From: Phaeosaccion multiseriatum
Taxonomy: Eukaryota > Protista > Ochrophyta, other classes
Assembly (NCBI GenBank): GCA_965112735.1
Contig: OZ218958.1
Span: 310,001 to 374,000 of the forward strand
Reading direction: 5' to 3'
DNA: 64,000 nt
The position numbers were made by a program, and so were the translations under genes. The notes below the pieces were generated by a model. That model was given only the letters and a program-made list of their open reading frames with translations. It had not been told where the DNA came from and ran no database searches. Shown here piece by piece: positions 43,050 to 64,000 of this stretch (positions are counted from its first letter, which is position 1; each line of letters opens with the position of its first letter).

Positions 43050-46578
<3,529 letters not shown>

Positions 46579-47082
46579 GTCTGTAGCCAGCGGACGCAAA
46601 CGAGACACGCACGCACCCACAGGGCTTGAAGTTTGGTGGTGCCCGTCCTTGTTGCCTTTGCTCTCTCGGGGCAGCATAACGACAGCAGAGCCGCTTGAGG
46701 CTGAGCAGGAGGGGCGCAGACTGGCTGCTTGGTAGTAGCTGGTCACCGCCTATTGTATTGTAGATATATGTAGTCAGGAAAAAAAAATATACTACCATCG
46801 ACAGACGCGAGGGTCGAATACTCGTTGTCTTGTTGTAAGACGCCTGGTTCGACCCCTGACGTGCTACTACTTTGGTATTGACCTTATCCTCGGCCCCTGA
46901 CGGAAGGAGGCGGTATTACGCAAGGACATTGACGTCCATGGGCAGAGGAAGGAGGACTGGCAGAAAGTTGTTGTGGCGCTGAAGGCCATCAATCTGGTGC
47001 TTGTACTGGATGATGGTGGAGGCCAGGCACACGCGTCCGGACTGGCGTCTTCGCGGTAGCGGCAGGGGCCAAGGAGGGGGAA

Positions 47083-48083
47083 GTGCCGGGAGAGGGCATG
47101 CTGGCCGCTGACCGGGAGGAGCAAGAGAGCCAGGCGTGGCGCCGGCACACGGGGCAGACTGTGCAGGTGCAGCTCGTCGACCCCGAGGGGTTTCCCGGGG
47201 GGGCGGACCTTTCGAGCAATGCCTTGGCAGTCACCCTCGAAGGCTCCGAGGTCCAAGTGTGTATGTGGGGGGGGCAGGCTGTCGAAGGCTTCGATGCTGC
47301 GAAGGTGTGTGACGACCTCAAGCACAAGAAAACGACGTGGCTTTGTGCTGCCCGTCCAACAAAGAGAGAGTGGGAACGGAAGGAGAAGTGTGTGAGTGAC
47401 GGCTGGACGGTGCGGGTCCAACAACGACCTCAGCGGCCAGCGACGGCAATCCCGGAAGGGGACCACGGGGACGTGGCGGCCCGAATCGTGGACAGCGCCA
47501 TCTCTCACAACTCCAACACGGCGGTGGACGGGAAGGCAGAGCAAGTTCAGGCCGTCCTGACGGAGTGTGCAGCAAACGGCACACTGTCCATGCTTGAGAT
47601 TGCTCTGAACGGCGGAGCGTTCCTCCAAGAATTTCTGGGTCTGTCGAAAGAGGCCCAGGGGGGCGACTATGGTGGTGTGTATGTCTGTGCGCTGCACACC
47701 GACAAGATGAAGGCAGGAGCTGTGCAGGATGCGCTTCAAGGGTGGCTGCAGAGGCTCCGTGGCGCCGGACAGCTCATCCCCATGGGGCTGGTCCACAACA
47801 TCGACCTGCTCGATAAGCTCCCGCACGACCGACCTATCGTCGTTGTGTGTGTTGGGGAGGGGAAGGAGAAGGACTTGCGCAAAAGCCGCCTCGAGAAGCA
47901 CATTAGAGGCACGGGAGGAGCGCCTCTCCGCATGGATAGCGGCTCTCGTCCATGCTGGTCTGGCGACCGAGCAGGATGTGAAGAACGCCTTCTATGTGGT
48001 GTACCAGCCGTCCTCGGTCGATGGCCGCCTGATCGGTGAAGCCACCATCTCGGAGATGCTCCACAGCAACATTAACTGCGCAG
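47083..48083 (+). pseudogene. GIY-YIG-like nuclease-domain pseudogene (left arm)
   Basis: GGVYVC...VCVGEG...DLRKSRLEKH...GEATISEML..NIN. Frameshift near 47925; in-frame stops upstream. Confidence 0.55.
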
Positions 48084-49038
48084 GAAATGTTTGCTGTGGA
48101 GCATCTCGGAGATGGTTGCCTCACCCAACAGGCGGTTATGGGTCGAGGACTGTTGGTACACCACATAATAGGCGTCCTTCACATCCTGCTCTGTCGCCAG
48201 ACCAGCAAGGACGAGAAAGGACGAGAGCCGCTATCCATGTGGAGAACAATGGCGCTCCTCCCGTGCCTCTGATGTGCTTGCGGAGGCGGCTTCTGCGCAA
48301 GTCCTCTGCCTTCCCCTCTCCAACATACACAACGATGATAGGTCGGTCGTGCGGGAGCTTATCGAGCAGGTCGATATTGCGGACCAGCCCCATGGGGATG
48401 GGCTCTCCGGCGTCACGGAGCCTCTGGAGCCACCCTTAAAGCGGCCCCCGCACAGTTCCTGCCTTCATCTTCTCGGTGTGCAGTGCACAGACATACACAC
48501 CACCATAGTCGCCCCCCTGGGCCTCTTTCGGCAGACCCCGAAATTTTTCGAGGAACTCTCCGCCGCCCAGAGCACTCTCAAGCATGGGCAGCGTGCCGTT
48601 TGCTGCACACTCCGTCAGGACGGCCTGAACTTGCTCTGCCTTCCCGTCCACCGCCGTGTTGGAGTTGTGAGAGATGGCGCTGTCCACGATTCGGGCCGCC
48701 ACGTCCCCGTGGTCCCCTTCCGGGATTGCTGTCGCTGGCCGCTGAGGTCGTTGTTGGACCCGCACCGTCCAGCCGTCACTCACACACTTCTCCTTCCGTT
48801 CCCACTCTCTCTTTGTTGGACGGGCAGCACAAAGCCACGTCGTTTTCTTGTGCTTGAGGTCGTCACACACCTTCGCAGCATCGAAGCCTTTGACAGCCTG
48901 CCCCCCCCACATACACACTTTGACCTCGGAGCCTTCGAGGGTGACTGCCAAGGCATTGCTTGAAAGGTCCGGGCCCCCGGGAAACCCCTTGGGGTCGACG
49001 AACTGCACATGGACAGTCCGCTCCGCGTGCCGGAGCCA
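47137..49038. repeat. Long spacerless imperfect palindrome (arms ~950 bp) centred on CTGC|GCAG at 48079/48080
   Basis: ORFs 47083-48039(+) and 48436-49158(-) encode near-identical peptides. Complementarity continues to the centre: ccatctcggagatgctccacagcaacatt vs aatgtttgctgtggagcatctcggagatgg. Confidence 0.95.
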
Positions 49039-49125
49039 CTTGAGCGACGTGGGCTTTTCCCGGCGGGGCTGCTGTTGTTGGTGTGGGGAAAAAAAAAAGC
49101 AAGCGGTGGTGAGAATCTGGAAGAC

Positions 49126-49159
<34 letters not shown>

Positions 49160-49166
49160 CACCCAC
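48076..49166 (-). pseudogene. GIY-YIG-like nuclease-domain pseudogene (right arm)
   Basis: GGVYVC...VYVGEG...DLRRSRLRKH. Premature TAA at 48436 (CAA in the left arm) and an indel near 48215. An upstream intron donor (aag|gtgggt) lies at ~49166. Confidence 0.55.
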
Positions 49167-50056
49167 CTTGGTTGAAGAGTCGTCATGTGGTCGGAGAGCA
49201 GCAGCCGCGGCCGTTCCAACAACTGCTGTGGCAGCCGCAGCTGCCGCAAACCCGATGCCATCACCCCCCCCCCACACATCCCTCCTCTCCCTCCCCTCCC
49301 ACGGCCGCAAGCGTGTCCGGCGCTGCGCCATGTTGTTCACGAGAGAGAGAGAGAGAAGGAAGGAATGAGAGAGAGAGACAAAAGGGTGTGACGGTTGGAA
49401 CAACAACCAGTGACTCTGACGGTGGAAAAATAGGGGACAAGTCGCCCATACCGTTGCGCGCCAGCTCGGCCGACCCCCCCTCGAGGCTTCCTGTCGCACC
49501 CCTCTTGAGCCTCATCCCGCTGCTGCTACCGCTGCTGCTCCCACTGCTCCCACTGCTCCCACTGCTCCCGCTGCCGCAGCTCATGCCGCTTTTGAGCCCC
49601 CCCCCGCCGCTCTCGCTGCTGCCCGCCGCGCCCCCCTTGTTGAGCCCCACCCCGCTGCTACTGCCGCTTCTGCCGCCGCTGCTCCCGCTGCTTCCGCTGC
49701 CGTTGGCTATTTCCCTCCCTCCCTTATCTCCCCCCCCCCTTCATCCCGTCCGGGGGAATAATGGCACGCAAAGACGACCTTCCCTCCTATACTGGCCCAG
49801 CTCGTGCCCGCAAGCTCTACAAGGGGTTTAGAGAATACTCCACTGGCTCTGTGCCAATATGTGAAGCCTCCTATTATAATGTAGCGTGCTCAAGGTCCTG
49901 GTTGAAGAGAAAAAGAAAAAAGGTTCTAGAAAAGGGGTCCTGACACCAATACTAGACATCGCCCTCTAAATTGGGGGAAGTATCGATATCGACCTAGACC
50001 CAGACAGCACACTGCCCCCACAAGACTAAGCTTTACGTACAGCATCCCCAATGCCG

Positions 50057-51000
50057 TCAACGCGCAGCTCTCTTGCGTACCTTCTTTGTCGGCGGTCCTG
50101 AGCCTCCAGACAGAAACTCCCGAGCTCGACTGACAAGCTCCTGGCTGGTCTGGGAAGTTCTTAAAAGAAAGGTCTCCAACAGGACAGGCACATCAGCCGC
50201 AAGCGTACGGATGGGCTCCATGCTGTTCTCCTCCGGCTCAAAGCCAACCCACTGAACTTGGACGAGAAAGTCGCCACCCTCACCCTCGACGCGGTCGACA
50301 AGTCTCTCCACAGTCCATAGGGGAGCGGGTATGGATCTGGGCGAGTGCGTCAGTGCTGACACCAACACACGCATCACAATAGTAGCGTAGCCGTGAAGCA
50401 TGAGCAGTGAAGCGCCTCTTCTTGCCAATCAGCTCCTCCACTTCATATACCATGGGGCTCACCTCACAGATCACTCTGTAGGGCCCACTCCACACTCCAC
50501 GCAGCTTGCTATGGGCCAAAACGTTGGCCATATTGACAAAGACACCAGGAACGAAGACGCCAGTGTGACCAAGCTTGCGCGTCAAGTCCGTCTCGAGTCT
50601 CATCGCCAGCAGCAGGCAGTCCATCGGCGCATCGTTGTGGAAGACACGCTTCTTCTCACGCACTGCCTGCAGATGGTCGTAAATGCGCTGATGGACTGCC
50701 TGCTGCTGGCGATGAGACTCCTCTCCAATCGCCTTAAACATACCCTCCGGTAGCTTGCATACACGCATCTTCTTGACAAGATCAGCGTCGTTCACCAAAA
50801 TCACGTCCAGAGGGTGCACAGGCTTGCTGTTCGTGTGCAACTCAATAGGAGAGAGACCGTCGCGTGAAGGGCTCGGAGTAGAATTGTGCGCCGCCTCTAC
50901 CATGTGGAGTCTCAAAGGTGATTGGCATGTTCGAATCCGGATTGCCGCCAGTTGGAGACGTACTATGACGTCATTCATTGCCTTATTTCTGTGGCGCACC
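50057..51000 (-). mobile_element. Degenerate Ty3/Gypsy (chromovirus-type) LTR retrotransposon fragment: integrase end, GPY/F, chromodomain
   Basis: AHNSTPS...GLSPIEL (integrase core end), KLRGVWSGPYRV..VYEV..HASRLRYY (GPY/F), VERLVD..FLVQVQWVGFEPEENSMEP (chromodomain). Frameshifted; no gag or RT seen. Confidence 0.85.
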
Positions 51001-51263
51001 GCCCAGAATCCGGACTCCGCCCTGCAGAGGCCACCAGAATCCGGAATCCGCCCTGCAGAGGCCAAATTTAGAATCTCTGAGGTGCCGACTTCACGGGCGT
51101 GTGAATGTGATGTGGGCCCGCCAAAAAGCCTGGATCACCAACACGGCCACTTGCGGTTTCCCCGCCCGCCCCCCCAAATAACAAAATCGCCCTCCCCCCC
51201 TCCTCCCCCCTCGCCCTTTATCATCTTTGATATGGAGGTATGTCGCCGAGAGAGGGGACTATT

Positions 51264-56594: not shown

Positions 56595-59500
56595 ATGGGG
56601 GCGCAACAATCGTTTCCCCGTGGCACGGGCGCCGCTAACGGCTCAAGAAGCAATCAAGACGGGGTTCTCCACAACATTGGCCCTTTGCTGAGGGAGACGC
56701 AGGTCTTCGCCAAATGTGAGTGGGAGACCAGCCACATGGGATTTCGCCGCTATGCATCCGTGCATTTTGCTGCATTTGTGGTATTAATCCTCCTCGCTTA
56801 TCCTGTTGACTTGTCCACGCCAGGGACGATACACGACGTTCGCCAGCTCTACAAACGCTTCAAAGGGCAGGTGTTTGGCTTTTCTCTGGTGGAGCCACAG
56901 TTTGAATGCGTCGTGAGCTTCAAGGAGGGCCTGGAGAAGGAAGTCGGTGTCTCGCTGCACGCGCTCTTCAACATCCTCGACAATGATAATGATGGCAGGA
57001 TCGACGGCCTGGAGTTGCTGGGCGGCCTTGCGCTGTGCTGCACGGGGTCCTTTGAGGAGAAGACGCGCCTGTGCTTTGAGCTTTACGACTTTAACCTGAA
57101 CGCCTCTCTGTCCCGGAGCGAGCTGGTCATGATGATGCAGAGCTCCGTGTGTGGTATGCTCGTGCTGACGGGGATGATGGAGGAGCACGAGCCCCCGTTA
57201 GAGTATTTTGAGATGCTGGCCGCAGAGGTAAGGAGAAGCGAAGCTGGTGCGGTCTTCAAGACGGTCAGGCGGGCGTGGCCGGATGACCCATTGGAATGAC
57301 GAAAATATGGCGCACCCCTCCTCAGGCTTCCAGGCCCGTTATGTGATTGACCTTCTCCTCATTTCCTTCGCCCCCCCCCCCCCCAACCTTTCTTCTCCCT
57401 CCCTTCCGTCCTCCCGTTGGCTTGTCACTGTAATGCAGGCTGTTAAGAAGGTGGGCAGCGCAGACCAGCAGTCCATCGGATACGAGGGCTTTGTGGACTG
57501 GGCTCGCTCCAACAGAGAGATGATGACTTGCCTGGAGAGGGTCAGTCAGGCCACTCGCATGCCTCACGAAGACACTGACAGGTATATGAGCCAAGGGGGG
57601 GGGGGGGGGGCAGGTGTTTTATTGCGCTGAAGTCGCTGCGCCTCACTCGTCGCTGAGCGCAAGTCTTGCGTGTACTGACGTGATCCACCCCTTCTCTTTT
57701 GAGCCTCGCAACCCTTCTGCTTCCTTGCTCACCCAACTGAACCCTCTCTCTTTAATCCTTTCGTGCCCGCCTTTGCCGATCCTTGGAACGGCTCCGTCAC
57801 CTGCTCCCGTGCTTCTCAGCGAGGACTGCGCAAGCGAGGCGAGCGAAGACGGTCCAGACAGCGACTTGGAGGCCGAGCTCAGGAGTGCGGGGAAGGAGCT
57901 GGAGCCAGACGCCAAGCTCGTGAATGCGCATTACGGTGGCGGTAGCAGCTACAAACAGCAGCAGGAACAGCAGCAGCAGCAGCGGCGGCGGCAGCGACTC
58001 GACGGCAGCGGCAGCGGGCAGCACCGGACCACGAAAGGTGCTCAACGCGAGAGCTTGGCCCCGTTCAGAGGCCCAGGAGGCGGCGGGGATGAGTTCATGG
58101 CGGTGAGGCCGTGGCTAGGAACCATTGTCGAGCCCACAGGATACGTGCCTGAAAAGAAGAATGCCGGGGAGGCTCCCGACAGTAACCTCCACTTGGCATG
58201 GGTGAACGGATATCGTGCCCAGGACTGCCGCAACAATGTGCTCTACCTCAACAGCTCGGAACCCCATATGGCGGGAGGAATCGTGTACCCAGCGGCGGCT
58301 TTGGGTATCGTGTATGACCCTGTGACCCACACGCAGCGCTACTACCAGGGCCACACAGATGACGTCATCTCCATCGCGATTCATCCGGATGGAGTCTTGG
58401 TGGCCACCGGACAAGTGGGAAAGACTCCAGCCATTCACGTGTGGGACAGCACATCCCTCGAATGCCAGGTGGGTGAGGGCCCTGCGAACAAAGCAATGAA
58501 TGTTTCCATTTGCTGATCGTCGAAGAGTGTACGGCTTTCTCCTCTCGTTTGCTGCTGCCGCCGCCGCCGCTCAAACCGAGCCTTGGGCCCTTCCCACCCC
58601 GCCGTCTCTCGCTTTGCTTCACCTCATTCAGGTCAGTATCAGCGGCTTCCATCGGCGAGGAGTGTCACTGCTGTGCTTCAGTCCGGACGGAGGGCGGTTG
58701 GCCAGCGTGGGTCTTGACAACGACCACTCTATCGCCATTCACGACTACTGGCGCTCGGGTAAGCTACTCGCCTCGGGAAAGGGTCACCCGAGGAAGCTTC
58801 TCGGTCTGGCCTTCAGTCCCGACGGAAAGACAATTGTTGCGGTCGGGGTCAAAGTTGTGCGCTTCTTTACTGTGGAAGGGCGGAGTCTCAAAGGCCGCAA
58901 TGCTACTGTCGGCCGCAAGGGCCAGATGCAGACCTTTCTGTGCGTGTGCTTCATCGGGAACGACGCTATTGTCGGCTGTGCCTCCGGTGAGCTGTACCGC
59001 TTCTCTGGGCAGAAGCTCGTGCAAGTGATACAGGCACACGGAGTCAAGGAAGCTGTACTTGCCATGGCACCCTCGCCGGCCACAGGCGGCATCATCACGG
59101 GAGGGAGGGACAACATGGTCCACACATTCGACAGCTCACTCAAAGCGGTGGGGCCATCCGTCGACCTGGCCGAGGACCTGGACGGGGACGGCAAGGCGGA
59201 CTATGAGAGCTGCTGTCCGTCGGTGGTGAGTGTGTGCGCAGGTCATCGAAAGCTGCTGGTGGGGACGCGAGGGAGTGAGATTTTCGAAGTCCAAATGCCC
59301 CAGGGGGTCACGGAGCAGCAGCCTCGAGTACGACGCTTGCTTGCAGGGCATTACGCGGGCGAGGTGTGGGGGCTCGATGCTCACCCCCACAAGGCCGAGT
59401 ACGCATCTGCGGGTGACGACAAGACCATCCGCCTGTGGAGCTTGCGCAGGAGGGACCAGATTCTCATGCGCGACTTGCCTGAAGCGGCTCGGACGGTGAC

Positions 59501-62029
59501 ATACTCCCCCGACGGTCGGTACCTGGCCCTGGGCATGAACAATGGGGCAGTTGCCGTGCTGAGGAGCAGCGATTTGGCGACGGTTTCGGCCTGGCGCCAC
59601 TGCAAACGAGCCGTGTCGGTGATACGCTATTCTCCGGATGGCTCCGTGTTGGCTGTGGGGGGGCACGACACCAACATTTATCTATACAGCATCGATCCGT
59701 CCATCGCCGGAGGAGGAGAGGAGCCGGGGGCGGGCGGAGGGGGCGAAGGAGGGAGGAGAGGCGGCGGACGCGGTGGTGCCGCCGAGACCCGGGGGGGTGG
59801 CGGAGCGGTGAGAGGCCGACACGTAGCTGCCCCCGGGGGGGGGTCGATGCTGGGCGGACGCGGCAGCAGGAGCGCAGGCGCAAGCCTTGGCGGTGGCGGG
59901 CACAAAGTGCCTGGTGTCAGGGGAAATTCAAAACGACGGGGGATGGGGGTGGGGGGCACTGCCAGAGTCGGAAGTGCGGGAGCAGGGCTGGGACGGGAGG
60001 CAGGCGGGGAGGGGACCAACACCAGGGGGGGCGCAAGGAAGGCGTTTGCTCGCCGCGCCGTCTGTCGCGGACACAGCAGCTACATTACGCACATGGACTT
60101 CTCCGCCGATGGCAAGGTGCTTCAGAGCAACTGTGGGGCCTACGAGCTCTTGTTTTGGGACACAGTGGGCAATCAGATTCGATCTGCCTCGTCGCTCAGA
60201 GATGTGCATTGGGCCTCGTGGACGTGCACCCTGGGTTGGCCCGTGCAAGGTGAGAAGAAGAGGAGAGGGGGGCGGCTCCGAGTCGAGGCCCCAAGGCAGG
60301 AGAGGACATGGGGAGGGGGTGCCGATCTCGAGAAAGCGCAGCACTGAACGAGCTTTCCGTCGTTTCGCATGTACTTCCACGAATGTGGGCGGCAACCTTT
60401 CCTTCCTTCCTTCCTTCCTTCCTTCCTTCCTTCCTTCCTTCCTTCCTTCCTTCCTTCCTTCCTTCCTTCCTACACCTCCTTCAATTACTTACCTGCTTAC
60501 ATGTGTTCTTTTATAGGTATTTGGCCCACTTGCTCGGATGGTACCGACATTAATGCCGTCGACAGAGACATCGCAGCGGTAAGTCAAGGAAAAGACGTCC
60601 GGAGCGCTCCAGCGTATATGTGAATGAGAGATCGAAGGGCAGTCCGTCTCGGAAACACTAACGGGGGGCATGGGGTTGATGGGAAGAAAGCATGCCTTCG
60701 CCCCATGAGATGACTTTACCTTGCCGAAGTACTGGGTCGGGCTTTTTTTGTTTTGACCCTCTTCCAGATAAGAGGGAGGAAGGGAAGCCTGACGAGACGA
60801 AACTGAAACTGGAACTCGCCCCACCTTGTTTTCCCGCCCCCTCTCGCCCACCCTCTCTCCACCGACGATGTGATTGGAATGCATCGCTACTGCATGGGAG
60901 CAGGGCGTACTCGCTACGGGAGACGACATGTCCGGAGTCAACCTCTTTCGATACCCATGCGCGAGCAAGGCGCCTCTGAAACTGTCATACAAGGGGCACA
61001 GCAGCCACGTCACCAACGTACGATTTAGCAGCGACCATCGCTTCCTCCTCTCCACGGGCGGGGGGGATCGGTGCGTCTTTCAGTGGAGGCATGAGTTGGA
61101 GGACTACGAGAGCACGGACGAGGAGGAGGGCGACGATGACGACGACGACGATGAGGAGGACGGAGAGGCTGGGCAACACAGCAACAAGGTAAGCGCGGGC
61201 GGGCCAGAAGAGTATGGCAGATGCAGATCGGTAGATAGTGTGATTTCCTCACCCACTCCAACGTGCTCACTGCTCACTGCTCACTGCGGGCAGCAGGTCA
61301 AAAGTGACGGGCTTTGACTGACCTTGCTGGCTGCAAGCCTGCCTCGACTCGACATCTTCTCTCTGCTTTATGCACACACATACCGCACTGGTCCTGCTTA
61401 CTTACTTTGCTTCGCTTGCCCACCCAAACAGCCAACAACTGCGTCGCCGCCGGACCTCCCTGCCTCCTCCCGCCCTTGGCTGGACCAGTCCGACTTGCTC
61501 CTTCTGGGGCACCAAGGAGGGGTGCGCGCGTCAAGCGGAGGCCCTGTTCAGTCGGCAAGGGGCGGCGGCGGGGATGAGTTCATGGCTTTCAAGCCGTGGG
61601 TCGGAGTCATCGTGGAGCCCACCGCCCACGCCCGTGGAGAGGGCTTACATAGTAAGTGGAGAGGGCTTGCTTCTCGCATTGGGCTGCTTTCTTCTCTTTT
61701 TCTTTCGAGCTTCACTAAACGCCTCGAAGAGCGTTGTGTGTTGTTGTGCGGAGGCGCCCTTGTGCTTTTGCTCCACCCCTTGCCCTCCCATTGATCTTCT
61801 TCGCCCCCTGTGCACTCTCCTCTTGTCTCCACCCCCTTCCACCCCGCCCCCCCCTCTACAGGCGGGAGCACTGACGTGGACCTGGAGCTGTCTTGGGTTT
61901 ACGGCTATCGCTCACAGGACTGCAGGAACAACCTCTTCTACTCCGCCGGACTGGACGTCGTGTACCACGCAGCGGCGTTAGGGGTGGTGTACAGGAAGGC
62001 AAGAGGCGAGCAGATCTTTCAGCAGGTAC

Positions 62030-62066
<37 letters not shown>

Positions 62067-64000
62067 GCGTGTGTGTACAATATGTGTGTGTCCTCTGTCG
62101 GTCGGTTGCGGAGGTTGGACTGTGCTTTTTCTCTATCGCCGTCGCAGCGCGGCCGGGGAAGGAGTGAGTCATGCTCCAATTTCGTTTCGCAGAAGATACC
62201 GCAACCCAGCCATAAGTACCCACATGTGCGGGGCTCTTTTTAATCTCCAATGGCTCTGCTGCTCTGCTGCTCTTTTGCTCTTTTGCTCTCGCTTCTCCCC
62301 AAACCGTATCCAAACACGTGTACTTATATGTGTACTTACGTATGACAGGGGGCGCACACGGATGACATCATCTCCATGGCCATGCACCCCTCGGGGCGGA
62401 TTGTCGCCACGGGAGAAGTCGGCAAAGCACCCAAGATTGTGCTGTGGGACACAGACACGTGCGAGAGTCTCGGCGTGCTGCAGGGCTTCCACAAGAGAGG
62501 GGTGTGTCTGCTGGCCTTCAACGAGGCGGGCGATTACCTGGTCAGTATTGGGCTGGACGACTCCCACTCGATGGCGATTTATCATTGGCAGCAGCGCAGA
62601 TTGGTCACTGTCTGTAGTACAGACAAAGGCAAGGTGCTCGGGCTTTGCTCTCTCCCCCCTCCTGGCCGTCTTGGAACGCCGCCAGCAAGGGGGAGGGGGC
62701 CCAGCAGCGGCGCAAGCGCTACTAGCACAGGCCGCTTCGTGACGTGTGGTAAAAACCACATGAAGTTTTGGGACTTGTCCGGACAGAATCTCAAGTGTCA
62801 AAAAGCGGTGTGGGGGAGGGGGAAGAGTAAGAGGGGGGCGACGAAACGAGCGTCCACCGGCGGAGGGAAAGGCTGCCATCGTCAGACGACTGTGGTGGTG
62901 GTGTGCTTCATGGGCGAAGCATGGTCTGGCGGACTGGACGGGTCCCTGGTGGAGTGGAAAGGGCACCGCGCTGTGGGGCACGTGGATACAGAGAACATTC
63001 ATCGAGGCGTCACCATCAATGCCCTCAGCGCCACAGCCGACGGGGGCGAAGGGCCGTTCTTGGTGTCAGGAGACAAAGCCGGGCTGGTGGTGGTATGGCA
63101 GTATGGGGAGGAGCACGGCAGCGTGGTGCCAAAGTTTGTGGCTCACTCTCGCCAATTCTCGCCCTCTCCACCTCCGAGACCTGGGGCCCGCAGTGGGCAG
63201 CTTCGAAACGCAATCAGAGCGGTTCACCTGCGCAACGGATCCGTGCTCGTTGGCACGCAAGGAAGTGAGATTTACGAGATTCTCGTGGACAACATGGAGG
63301 AGTACCATGAACGCGCGGACTACTACCACTACCACGACGACGACATCGCAGAGGACGCAGAGCTGCCCTCCTCGTCCTCGTCCTCCTCCTCCTCCTCCTC
63401 CTCCTACTCGGGCCGGCCCTTCAAAGGTGGAGCAAGGGGAAGCATCGAAGCCCAGCAGATTATGGGGGGGCATTTCAAGGGCGAGGTGTGGGGCTTGGCG
63501 GTTCATCCCTCCACCAACGAGTTCGCCACCGCCGGAGACGACGCTACTGTTCGGCGATGGAGCCTGGGGAGTGGTGGTGGTGGTGGTGGAGGAGGAGGAG
63601 GGGGCGCTGGCTCTGTATCGCCAACTCGTGCTGCTAGTGCGGAGGCTGCTGCTGCTGCTACTGGTGGTGCCAGGACGGGGGCCTCTTCCTTTGGCTGGCC
63701 CAGTAGCAGGGGCGTGGGCAATACCATGGGGCAGCTTGCTTGTGTCTCGCTCCATACCAAGGCTCGTGCGGTCGCATACTCGGCCAATGGAGCGCACCTC
63801 GCTGTGGCTCTGAGCAGTGGAAACGTGCTCATCCTCCTGAGCTCCCTCGAGGGCGGTACAGAGGAGGGCCCTGACGGCGCCGTTCGGGAGTACCTGGACG
63901 GGGTGGTGGCACAGCTGAAGGAGCCCTCACAGTGGGCCCAAGAGCTCAAGTACTCGAAGGACGGCAGCACGCTTGCTGTGGGTAGTCACGACGGCAAGAT
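56595..64000 (+). CDS. EF-hand + EML (echinoderm microtubule-associated protein-like, EML5/6-type) HELP/WD40 protein, runs off the window end
   Basis: MGAQQS myristoylation-like start. EF loops DNDNDGRIDGLE and DFNLNASLSRSE. Two HELP motifs (LAWVNGYRAQDCRNN, LSWVYGYRSQDCRNN), plus GHSSYITHMDFS, WASWTCTLGWPVQGIW, GHSSHVTNVRF. Exons ~56595-56715, 56824-57227, 57439-57581, 57820-58468, 58632-60249, 60518-60579, 60904-61188, (uncertain ~61400-61640), 61861-62026, 62350-end. Confidence 0.9.

Follow-up and report, generated by a model that had tools for sequence, protein, structure and literature searches.

Architecture of the locus

The locus consists of two inverted arms of 944 and 960 nt, which together form a palindrome of about 1.9 kb as read from the assembly (Table 1). 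The arms meet at CTGC/GCAG without any spacer, and the central 8-mer is flanked by two mismatches at +/-5-6 nt and by a 1-nt indel at +/-13 nt. Their alignment spans 961 columns at 91.3% identity and shows 66 mismatches (38 transitions and 28 transversions, a ratio of 1.36) and 18 indel columns that correspond to six events. A blastn E value of 0 between the arms rules out chance similarity. A DNA-level search of the 67-Mb genome with the arm sequence recovered these two arms only and, with the search settings used, the window (the whole 64-kb stretch of DNA analysed here) contains a single further inverted repeat, of 126 bp, at 50595-50720. Metagenomes scanned for the palindrome junction and the conserved core yielded 0 matches, and neither these scans nor a protein profile search turned up an outgroup or sister-strain locus in the pre-duplication state. 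In the assembled sequence the palindrome is real: the arm alignment and the genome search bear out the original prediction of a spacerless structure of about 1.9 kb built on a self-complementary 8-mer. A foldback transposon or MITE was considered and rejected, since dispersed copies with terminal inverted repeats would be expected and the 67 Mb hold the two arms only.

Table 1. Coordinates of the features of the palindrome locus (positions in the window)
Feature	Position	Strand	Basis or remark
Extension of the left pseudogene upstream of the repeat; relic of a nucleotidyltransferase head	46925-47135	+	Six-frame reading, tblastn against paralogs
Left arm: 3' part of the pseudogene, from nucleotidyltransferase-like 'ADLSSNAL' to GIY-YIG-like tail, cut at the centre	47136-48079	+	Arm alignment
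Near-identical block of 298 bp	47285-47582		One mismatch against its partner at 48593-48890
Left-arm lesion: TGT (Cys) for TAT (Tyr) in the YVGE motif	47848-47850	+	Tyr in the right arm and in both paralogs
Left-arm lesion: 5-nt deletion, frameshift	47924-47925	+	Counterpart bases in the right arm at 48246-48250
Centre of symmetry, CTGCGCAG	48076-48083		Sole perfectly symmetric core
Right arm: inverted partial duplicate of the left arm	48080-49039	-	Arm alignment; homology ends abruptly at 49039
Right-arm lesion: one extra base	48092	-	
Right-arm lesion: 10-nt tandem duplication, frameshift	48217-48226	-	
Right-arm lesion: premature TAA	48436-48438	-	CAA in the left arm

The two arms differ in what lies beyond them. 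On the left, a gene relic continues outside the repeat, with a DIDVH motif at 46925-46939, equated by eye with the DIDIH motif of intact paralogs, and a RxxxRVR...G.VP.G.EG stretch starting at 47020; it is broken by a frameshift near 47015-47020 and by a stop farther upstream. This relic is collinear with the paralogs in tblastn comparisons, but the similarity is weak (E about 0.02-0.03 in a small search space), and further 5' parts of the gene were sought beyond about 46,925 and not found. The left arm itself shares 27-30% amino-acid identity with the intact paralogs on C4 and C13. The reading frame of these paralogs runs more than 200 codons past the point matching the centre, so the centre cuts the protein short of its natural end. 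On the right, no family homology was found on the minus strand past 49039, a search downstream of the right arm for the lost 3' remainder of the gene returned low-complexity matches only, and inspection of the outer junction (49039/49040) revealed no clear microhomology.

The left arm thus runs into its original flank, whereas the right arm is truncated and joined to other DNA, an asymmetry of parent and daughter. The original prediction had seen two tail-to-tail genes that both stop at the same codon. Instead, the structure is one partial pseudogene, longer and already broken upstream, together with a partial, inverted duplicate of its final 944 nt. Along the frame of the E...N motif, the left copy is free of stops and runs on through the centre, whereas the right copy stops at a TAA across the centre, within the TTAA of the left arm (48071-48074).

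The parent gene family

The family from which the arms derive comprises two intact giant genes, on C4 and C13, and two dead loci, the palindrome locus and a second one at C4:5,055k. A profile search of 1.84 billion (1.84e9) proteins found 0 relatives of the family. Sequence search of the PDB likewise gave 0 matches, the ESM Atlas yielded no usable match, and neither pieces of the arms nor the intact paralog domains gave a significant match in Pfam, NCBIfam, PADLOC or PHROGs. Class II nucleotidyltransferases (CCA-adding/poly(A) polymerase) were sought by GGxxRD ... DxD and RDxTxNA-type motifs combined with a profile match. The paralogs carry GGCVRD ... DIDIH ... ADCTINAL motifs; the arms retain ADLSSNAL and the left flank DIDVH. 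The profile hint comes from phrog_1614 ('nucleotidyltransferase') only and is weak (E 0.094), with none in Pfam. We describe the family as giant orphan proteins with a CCA/poly(A)-polymerase-like head.

The tail of the arms had been read as a GIY-YIG-like nuclease, and the motif order behind this reading can be followed by eye, both in the arms, where it runs across frames, and in the two paralogs: G-V-Y ... Y-V-G-E ... R ... H ... E ... N. The predicted order of strands and helices is beta-beta-alpha-alpha-beta-alpha once an insert is set aside; the GIY-to-YIG spacing of about 55-60 residues spans two predicted helices. Profile evidence does not follow suit. The best match, to PF20815, involves one right-arm piece (E 0.28, 11.6 bits against a cut-off of 22.4), and the intact paralogs match neither PF01541 nor PF20815 nor their relatives in Pfam, NCBIfam, PADLOC and PHROGs. 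AlphaFold2 gave a model of the paralog domain alone with a pLDDT of 64.8 and a pTM of 0.62, while that of a 516-residue paralog region (pLDDT 36) was unusable. Foldseek found no match for the domain model; VIA-align placed the catalytic domain of I-TevI (1ln0_A) at rank 16, a weak structural match over 80 of its 92 residues (Z 4.4, rmsd 4.0) that lies within the noise range stated for the tool. Membership among the GIY-YIG nucleases is thus not established, and the label used here denotes a motif series and one weak fold match between predicted and known structures.

Compared with I-TevI, UvrC, Slx1, the Penelope-like endonuclease and ANKLE1/LEM-3, the family is alike in motif order and in predicted fold order. 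It differs from the classic GIY-YIG domain in the distance between its two defining motifs, which is about 10 residues in the latter, and in its fusion: the domain follows a CCA/poly(A)-polymerase-like head within giant orphan proteins. It also differs from Penelope-like elements, LEM-3 and ANKLE1 in having no reverse transcriptase, LEM or ankyrin parts. The suggested link to these elements is not supported: no reverse transcriptase domain turned up in the Pfam-scanned ORFs or in the proteins of the paralogs, the locus is single-copy, and the family carries a head of another kind. Nearby, the sole trace of a mobile element is the C-terminus of a Ty3/gypsy integrase, with a chromodomain, at 50060-51065.

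Divergence between the arms and other palindromes

When polarised against the intact paralogs, the lesions of the two arms are distinct (Table 1), and each of those listed in the original prediction (the left frameshift and YVG>CVG change, the right TAA and indel) reappears in the alignment. At the site of the 5-nt deletion, the right arm retains the paralog-like frame (GAPLFSTWIAAL against GAKCFNAIISAL). The dN/dS ratio between the arms is 1.06, with 16, 13 and 12 differences at the three codon positions, and substitution divergence reaches about 10% outside the near-identical block; outside this block the arms have drifted neutrally. Within it lie perfect duplexes of 160 and 137 bp. Given the overall rate of difference, at most one difference in 298 bp would be observed with a probability of about 4e-11, which becomes about 3e-8 when all possible positions of the block are allowed for. 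The simplest reading is that the block is probably a tract of arm-to-arm gene conversion. The same block could, in principle, alternatively mark selection for a paired stem.

Palindromes are also found elsewhere in this genome. The second dead locus of the family, which has exact words of 24-28 nt in common with each of the two intact paralogs, harbours five near-spacerless palindromes in 3 kb, and their centres are unrelated sequences with no shared motif. The small palindrome at 50595-50720 sits in a retrotransposon relic. No such palindromes were found in the 30 kb around the intact paralogs. Together with the present locus, the palindromes at C4:5,055k and in the retrotransposon relic suggest that the alga makes or tolerates fold-back events unusually often. 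Loss of the genes that open hairpins was rejected as a cause, as MRE11 and an SAE2/CtIP-like match are present in the genome.

Origin of the palindrome

We consider it likely that the locus is a fold-back inverted duplication: a scar that repair or replication left at the truncated end of a dead gene from an orphan family. A break or a stalled fork would have occurred inside the gene copy on the plus strand, and its 3' end would have switched to the complementary strand at the self-complementary centre, a likely microhomology for such a strand switch. About 950 nt would then have been copied back, and the copied end joined to unrelated downstream DNA at 49039/49040, with loss of the remaining coding sequence, which exceeds 200 codons in the paralogs. 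Both arms would subsequently have drifted as non-coding DNA, one stretch of 298 bp being re-homogenised by gene conversion between them. The original prediction had likewise proposed a fold-back or template switch at the 8-mer followed by long persistence, and both elements gain support from the continuity of the left arm with its flank, the abrupt end of the right arm and the dN/dS ratio. The break, the template switch and the order of events are inferred from this structure.

Several other explanations were weighed against this one. Long-read assemblies can contain fold-back chimeras, and the junction at 48079/48080 is known from the assembly alone, such that a chimeric read or a misjoin of loci or haplotypes might be suspected. 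A fold-back read should, however, produce near-identical or indel-rich arms, whereas 66 substitutions stand here against six indel events together with a near-identical block; the genome offers no second copy for a misjoin, and an inverted haplotig join is contradicted by homology that stops sharply at both outer edges and by unique flanks. We thus regard an artefact as very unlikely. We consider it even less likely that the two arms are functional convergent genes from which the apparent lesions are spliced out. Introns do exist in this genome and both arms hold long open frames, but the dN/dS ratio, the in-frame TAA, indels of 5, 10 and 1 nt and the loss of a catalytic-motif Tyr from one arm all speak against functional genes, as does the fact that the right copy begins mid-domain and that neither copy has the full length of the paralogs. 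In another scenario, a family-encoded nuclease would have cut the locus encoding it, or a sister locus, and hairpin or fold-back repair would then have produced palindromes in both dead copies. The presence of palindromes at both dead loci (one here, five in 3 kb at C4:5,055k), the GIY-YIG-like motifs and the weak I-TevI fold match are in line with this scenario, which nevertheless appears highly improbable to us: the nuclease identity of the family is unproven, the palindrome centres have no motif in common, and one palindrome lies outside the family, in a retrotransposon relic, which would fit a genome-wide process.

The original prediction further envisaged an endogenous hairpin-siRNA locus directed against a selfish nuclease family. 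A working locus of this type (endo-siRNA or proto-miRNA) would supply a dsRNA of about 900 bp to be diced, silencing the parent family or itself. Such a hairpin is physically possible: in silico, a single long hairpin is predicted for each strand, with folding energies of -1959.5 and -1925.3 kcal/mol (about -795 for shuffled sequences) and 896 arm-to-arm pairs, including the two perfect duplexes, and the near-perfect block could be a conserved stem. The genome encodes a Piwi domain (C13:419.6-420.9k, E 1.5e-24) and an RdRP (C1:3.767-3.770M, E 7.5e-97), and RNase III is found at three loci. Moreover, both dead loci of the family are palindromic, and the one at C4:5,055k shares its 24-28-nt words with both intact paralogs. 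Precedents exist in the hpRNAs of Drosophila simulans, born from the genes they silence (PMC10292708, PMC10317233), and in the inverted-duplication model of plant MIRNA origin (PMC3237417). What is missing is a visible target. No trans target with near-perfect complementarity over about 20 nt or more was found in the paralog loci or in the DNA search of the genome, because the longest exact word shared by the arms with the intact paralog loci measures 14 nt and there is no other genomic copy. In addition, 28 of the 66 mismatches are transversions, which break pairing, and the similar palindrome in a transposon relic fits a mutational process. Selection on RNA pairing in one orientation was rejected for want of strand bias in the wobble-compatible differences (22 against 16, p = 0.42). 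Rfam returned only sub-threshold matches to generic miRNA-hairpin models on both strands at the two palindrome centres (for example mir-3150, 42 bits against a gathering threshold of 100), which we take as an effect of any palindrome. A working hairpin-RNA locus is therefore unlikely here.

As in the Nmy/Tmy-type hpRNAs of D. simulans and in the plant MIRNA model, the arms come from the coding sequence of a gene family that has intact members at other loci, transcription is predicted to yield a long, imperfect hairpin, and the genome has RNAi genes; the element that differs is the trans-target relationship defining those loci, since no exact match longer than 14 bases connects the arms with the intact members. 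One could extend the hairpin idea to an alga that turns dead or surplus copies into hairpin loci unusually often, some of which may feed RNAi against an orphan family with nucleotidyltransferase- and nuclease-like motifs. We find this extension improbable; within it, the C4:5,055k cluster, with its perfect 24-28-nt matches to both intact paralogs, may be a more plausible source than the palindrome locus, whose contribution may possibly lie in the past only. If true, it would represent an algal counterpart of the arms race between hpRNAs and selfish genes in Drosophila.

Returning to the fold-back duplication that we favour, the locus is on its own an ordinary, old mutational scar in a dead gene. 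Its value lies in being a clean and dated case of an interstitial, spacerless fold-back duplication which has survived about 10% divergence and carries a probable gene-conversion tract. Counted genome-wide, such scars could become a measurable mutational signature. Inverted gene duplications are also the raw material of hairpin-RNA and microRNA genes in plants and flies, and an RNAi-competent alga with many such scars would be a good place to catch the birth of hairpin-RNA genes early.

Large palindromes, including those of sex chromosomes, remain similar through gene conversion between their arms. The present locus resembles them in its near-identical tract (298 bp, one mismatch), here set within otherwise diverged arms. 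Unlike the present locus, those palindromes measure tens of kilobases to megabases, possess spacers, contain working genes and are homogenised over most of their length.

A closer likeness is offered by fold-back inversions and inverted duplications that arise through single-strand hairpins or by strand switching at short inverted microhomology, a mechanism established in yeast (PMC7467729) and human (PMC3907307), and by templated inverted insertions at breaks (PMC11724301). These rearrangements have adjacent inverted arms and a short self-complementary junction, and one arm is continuous with the parent sequence while the far end is joined secondarily, as we observe here. The published cases are chromosome-scale and usually leave a short loop or spacer, whereas ours is interstitial, spans about 950 nt and has no spacer. 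They also arose recently, in a mutant, a patient or a tumour, whereas the duplication reported here is old, having diverged by about 10%, and has become fixed in the nuclear genome of an alga.

Structure of the palindrome and decay of its arms

The genome under study is eukaryotic (67 Mb in 22 contigs, ~60% GC), and the window corresponds to C9:310,001-374,000. The spacerless palindrome of ~1.9 kb described in the original prediction is present in its assembly: a repeat finder, pairwise alignment and self-BLAST agree that two inverted arms abut at 48079/48080 with zero spacer (see table). Across 961 aligned columns there are 66 mismatches (38 transitions, 28 transversions) plus six indel events that occupy 18 columns, giving 91.3% identity. 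Perfect central symmetry is confined to CTGCGCAG (48076-48083); each side of the centre then has two mismatches at 5-6 nt and a 1-nt indel at 13 nt. A DNA-level search of the whole genome matched the arms alone, and at the settings used a single further inverted repeat (126 bp) lies in the 64-kb window. The palindrome is real, old and spacerless.

Its neighbourhood is gene-poor and repeat-rich, with dense CT/GA, AGCC and CA microsatellites on both sides (window 45000-45320, 46012-46055, 49127-49160 and 49340-49380). To its right, at a distance of 7-13 kb, are tandem EMAP-like genes on the + strand (56595-60344 and 61810-62739), whose products combine an EF-hand, a HELP motif and two WD40 propellers; these are ordinary flagellate cytoskeleton genes.

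With the intact paralogs as a guide, lesions could be assigned to individual arms. As anticipated, each arm was inactivated differently, the left by a substitution in YVG and a deletion, the right by a premature TAA and indels. Differences between the arms fall at codon positions 1/2/3 in the numbers 16/13/12, with a dN/dS of 1.06 over 243 ungapped codons; protein-level selection has been absent from both arms since the duplication. CpG sites show a ~2.3-fold excess of differences (15/41, against 16% of positions, for 47137-47865 versus 48310-49038), a small sample that hints at cytosine methylation at the locus and is compatible with methylation-driven decay. Between 47285 and 47582 there is one mismatch in 298 bp, whereas ~10% of aligned bases differ in the rest of the arms. 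The position-corrected probability of such a block under a uniform divergence rate is ~3e-8, and gene conversion from arm to arm is its simplest cause.

Features of the palindrome, its gene family and other palindromic structures (window, contig or L025 positions; L025 is C4:5,051,000-5,060,999 of the same genome)
Feature	Position	Strand	Details
Left arm	window 47136-48079	+	family locus, with right arm
Right arm	window 48080-49039	-	inverted
Left-arm lesion	window 47848-47850		Tyr to Cys in YVG
Left-arm lesion	window 47924/47925		5-nt deletion
Right-arm lesion	window 48436-48438		CAA to TAA
Right-arm lesion	window 48217-48226		10-nt tandem duplication
Right-arm lesion	window 48092		one additional base
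Intact family copy	C4:4,093,812-4,095,359		within 1,615-codon open frame
Intact family copy	C13:1,308,506-1,310,056		within 3,156-codon open frame
Decayed family locus	C4:5,055,241-5,056,784
Palindrome	L025:3685-4139
Palindrome	L025:4590-5247		spacerless, centre TGGCCA, arms ~329 nt, 94% identity
Palindrome	L025:5717-5864
Palindrome	L025:5959-6355
Palindrome	L025:6336-6551
Small inverted duplication	window 50595-50720		38-nt arms, 97%; 50-nt spacer; entire 126 bp an imperfect palindrome
Isolated chromovirus-type LTR retrotransposon relic	window 50060-51065	-	integrase C-terminal PF22938, E 6.9e-6; chromodomain PF00385, E 4.1e-6

A pseudogene of an orphan family and its inverted copy

Six-frame genome searches with the arm translations located four related places, one of them formed by the two arms. 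Protein identity between the arms and the intact copies does not exceed 27-30%. The intact proteins carry the motifs GGCVRD ... DIDIH ... ADCTINAL, a part that, by its motifs, resembles a CCA-adding/poly(A)-polymerase head; this is followed by GCVY ... (~55 residues) ... YVGET ... R ... H ... E ... N. Directly upstream of the coding exon of the intact C4 paralog, and in frame with it, a multi-kilobase satellite (5842-9369 of L012, a stretch of C4) reads in one frame as an endless 'ETERQRDR'.

The arms enter the family protein midway through the head domain, at the position corresponding to QTIEVQLV/ADCTINAL, and leave it at the one corresponding to ELIGSN, beyond which the intact proteins have >200 codons more. 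The centre thus cuts the protein short and is not a natural stop. It had been proposed that two genes meet here and stop at the same codon. The left copy, however, has no stop near the centre in its motif-bearing frame, and the TAA of the right copy sits across the centre, within the TTAA of the left arm. Upstream of the left arm, on the same strand, sequence collinear with the family continues (DIDVH at 46925-46939; RPGTRVRTGVF ... GEVPGEG from 47020, a weak match), broken by one frameshift and a stop, whereas no family homology was found past the outer end of the right arm. This makes the left copy the parent and the right arm its partial inverted daughter: one pseudogene with an inverted copy of its end.

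The assignment to GIY-YIG nucleases is unproven. The motif order on which it was based can be read in the sequences, but profile libraries do not recognize the family (best match PF20815, E 0.28, for a piece of one arm; zero matches for the intact paralogs). A family profile found zero matches among 1.84 billion representative proteins, as did a search of PDB sequences, and an Atlas search came back blank. A domain-only AlphaFold2 model (pLDDT 64.8, pTM 0.62) has the strand/helix order expected for GIY-YIG, two inserted helices set aside. Foldseek found no match for it. The I-TevI catalytic domain ranked 16 among 48,161 chains (Z 4.4, rmsd 4.0 Å, 80/92 residues), a score within the noise range of the tool, although among the listed matches it has the most aligned residues, covering nearly the whole target, and is one of the few to span most of the model. 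The suggested link to Penelope-like elements or LEM-3 found no support: the ORFs scanned here contain no reverse transcriptase, and the partner domain of the family is nucleotidyltransferase-like.

A possible hairpin RNA and other palindromes

The palindrome had also been read as a putative hairpin-RNA locus silencing a nuclease family, which we regard as a minority possibility. If transcribed across the centre, either strand could physically form a single long hairpin (predicted at -1959.5 and -1925.3 kcal/mol versus ~-795 for shuffles), with ~890 pairs linking the arms and perfect duplexes of 160 and 137 bp, and genes for a Piwi-domain protein, an RdRP and RNase III are present in the genome. 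Nevertheless, no target for action in trans was seen, the longest exact word common to the arms and the intact paralog loci being <=14 nt and the genome holding zero further DNA copies; the silencing hypothesis appears currently target-less. Moreover, 28/66 mismatches are transversions that would break pairing, neither strand is favoured among the wobble-compatible differences (22 versus 16, p = 0.42), and Rfam returned at the centre, on both strands, sub-threshold generic miRNA-hairpin models. The palindrome cluster around C4:5,055k shares exact words of 24-28 nt with both intact paralogs, unlike the arms studied here, and is thus the better candidate source of hairpin RNA against the family.

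This cluster, in the dead C4 family locus, comprises five palindromes within 3 kb (C4:5,054,600-5,057,600, L025:3600-6600), whose centres are unrelated to one another and to that of the 1.9-kb palindrome. The 126-bp inverted duplication in the window resembles a further fold-back scar in dead DNA; it lies within the Ty3/gypsy integrase-chromodomain relic, which no reverse transcriptase ORF adjoins, and the peptide ESHRQQQAVH.RI is readable on both its strands. No palindromes occur in 30 kb around the two intact paralogs. The scars appear to point to a genome-wide mutational habit, seen mostly in dead sequence, rather than to a process tied to this gene family. The palindromes are not accounted for by a simple loss of hairpin-opening enzymes, since the genome contains MRE11 and a SAE2/CtIP-like sequence.

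Probable origin by fold-back inverted duplication

An assembly artefact at the palindrome is unlikely on sequence grounds: the arms differ chiefly by substitutions, whose transition/transversion ratio looks biological, and contain a conversion tract, their homology stops sharply at unique flanks, and the genome offers no other copy for misjoining. The best explanation for the locus is a fold-back inverted duplication at the truncated end of an orphan-family pseudogene, whose arms drift neutrally except for one conversion tract. Its anatomy matches such an event in four features: the parent arm runs on into its flank, the daughter measures ~950 nt, the arms meet at a short self-complementary word, and the outer end passes abruptly into unrelated DNA, the remainder of the gene being lost. 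The fold-back or template switch originally proposed agrees with this asymmetry of parent and daughter and with the site at which the arms meet. A 3' end left broken or stalled would have annealed to the complementary strand through an inverted microhomology and copied back, yielding the daughter arm; a second joining event would then have stabilised the copied-back end. This mechanism has been dissected in yeast (PMC7467729), and reports of it exist for human inverted duplications (PMC3907307) and templated inverted insertions at breaks (PMC11724301). The type of rearrangement is already known, and the palindrome described here is a further example of it.
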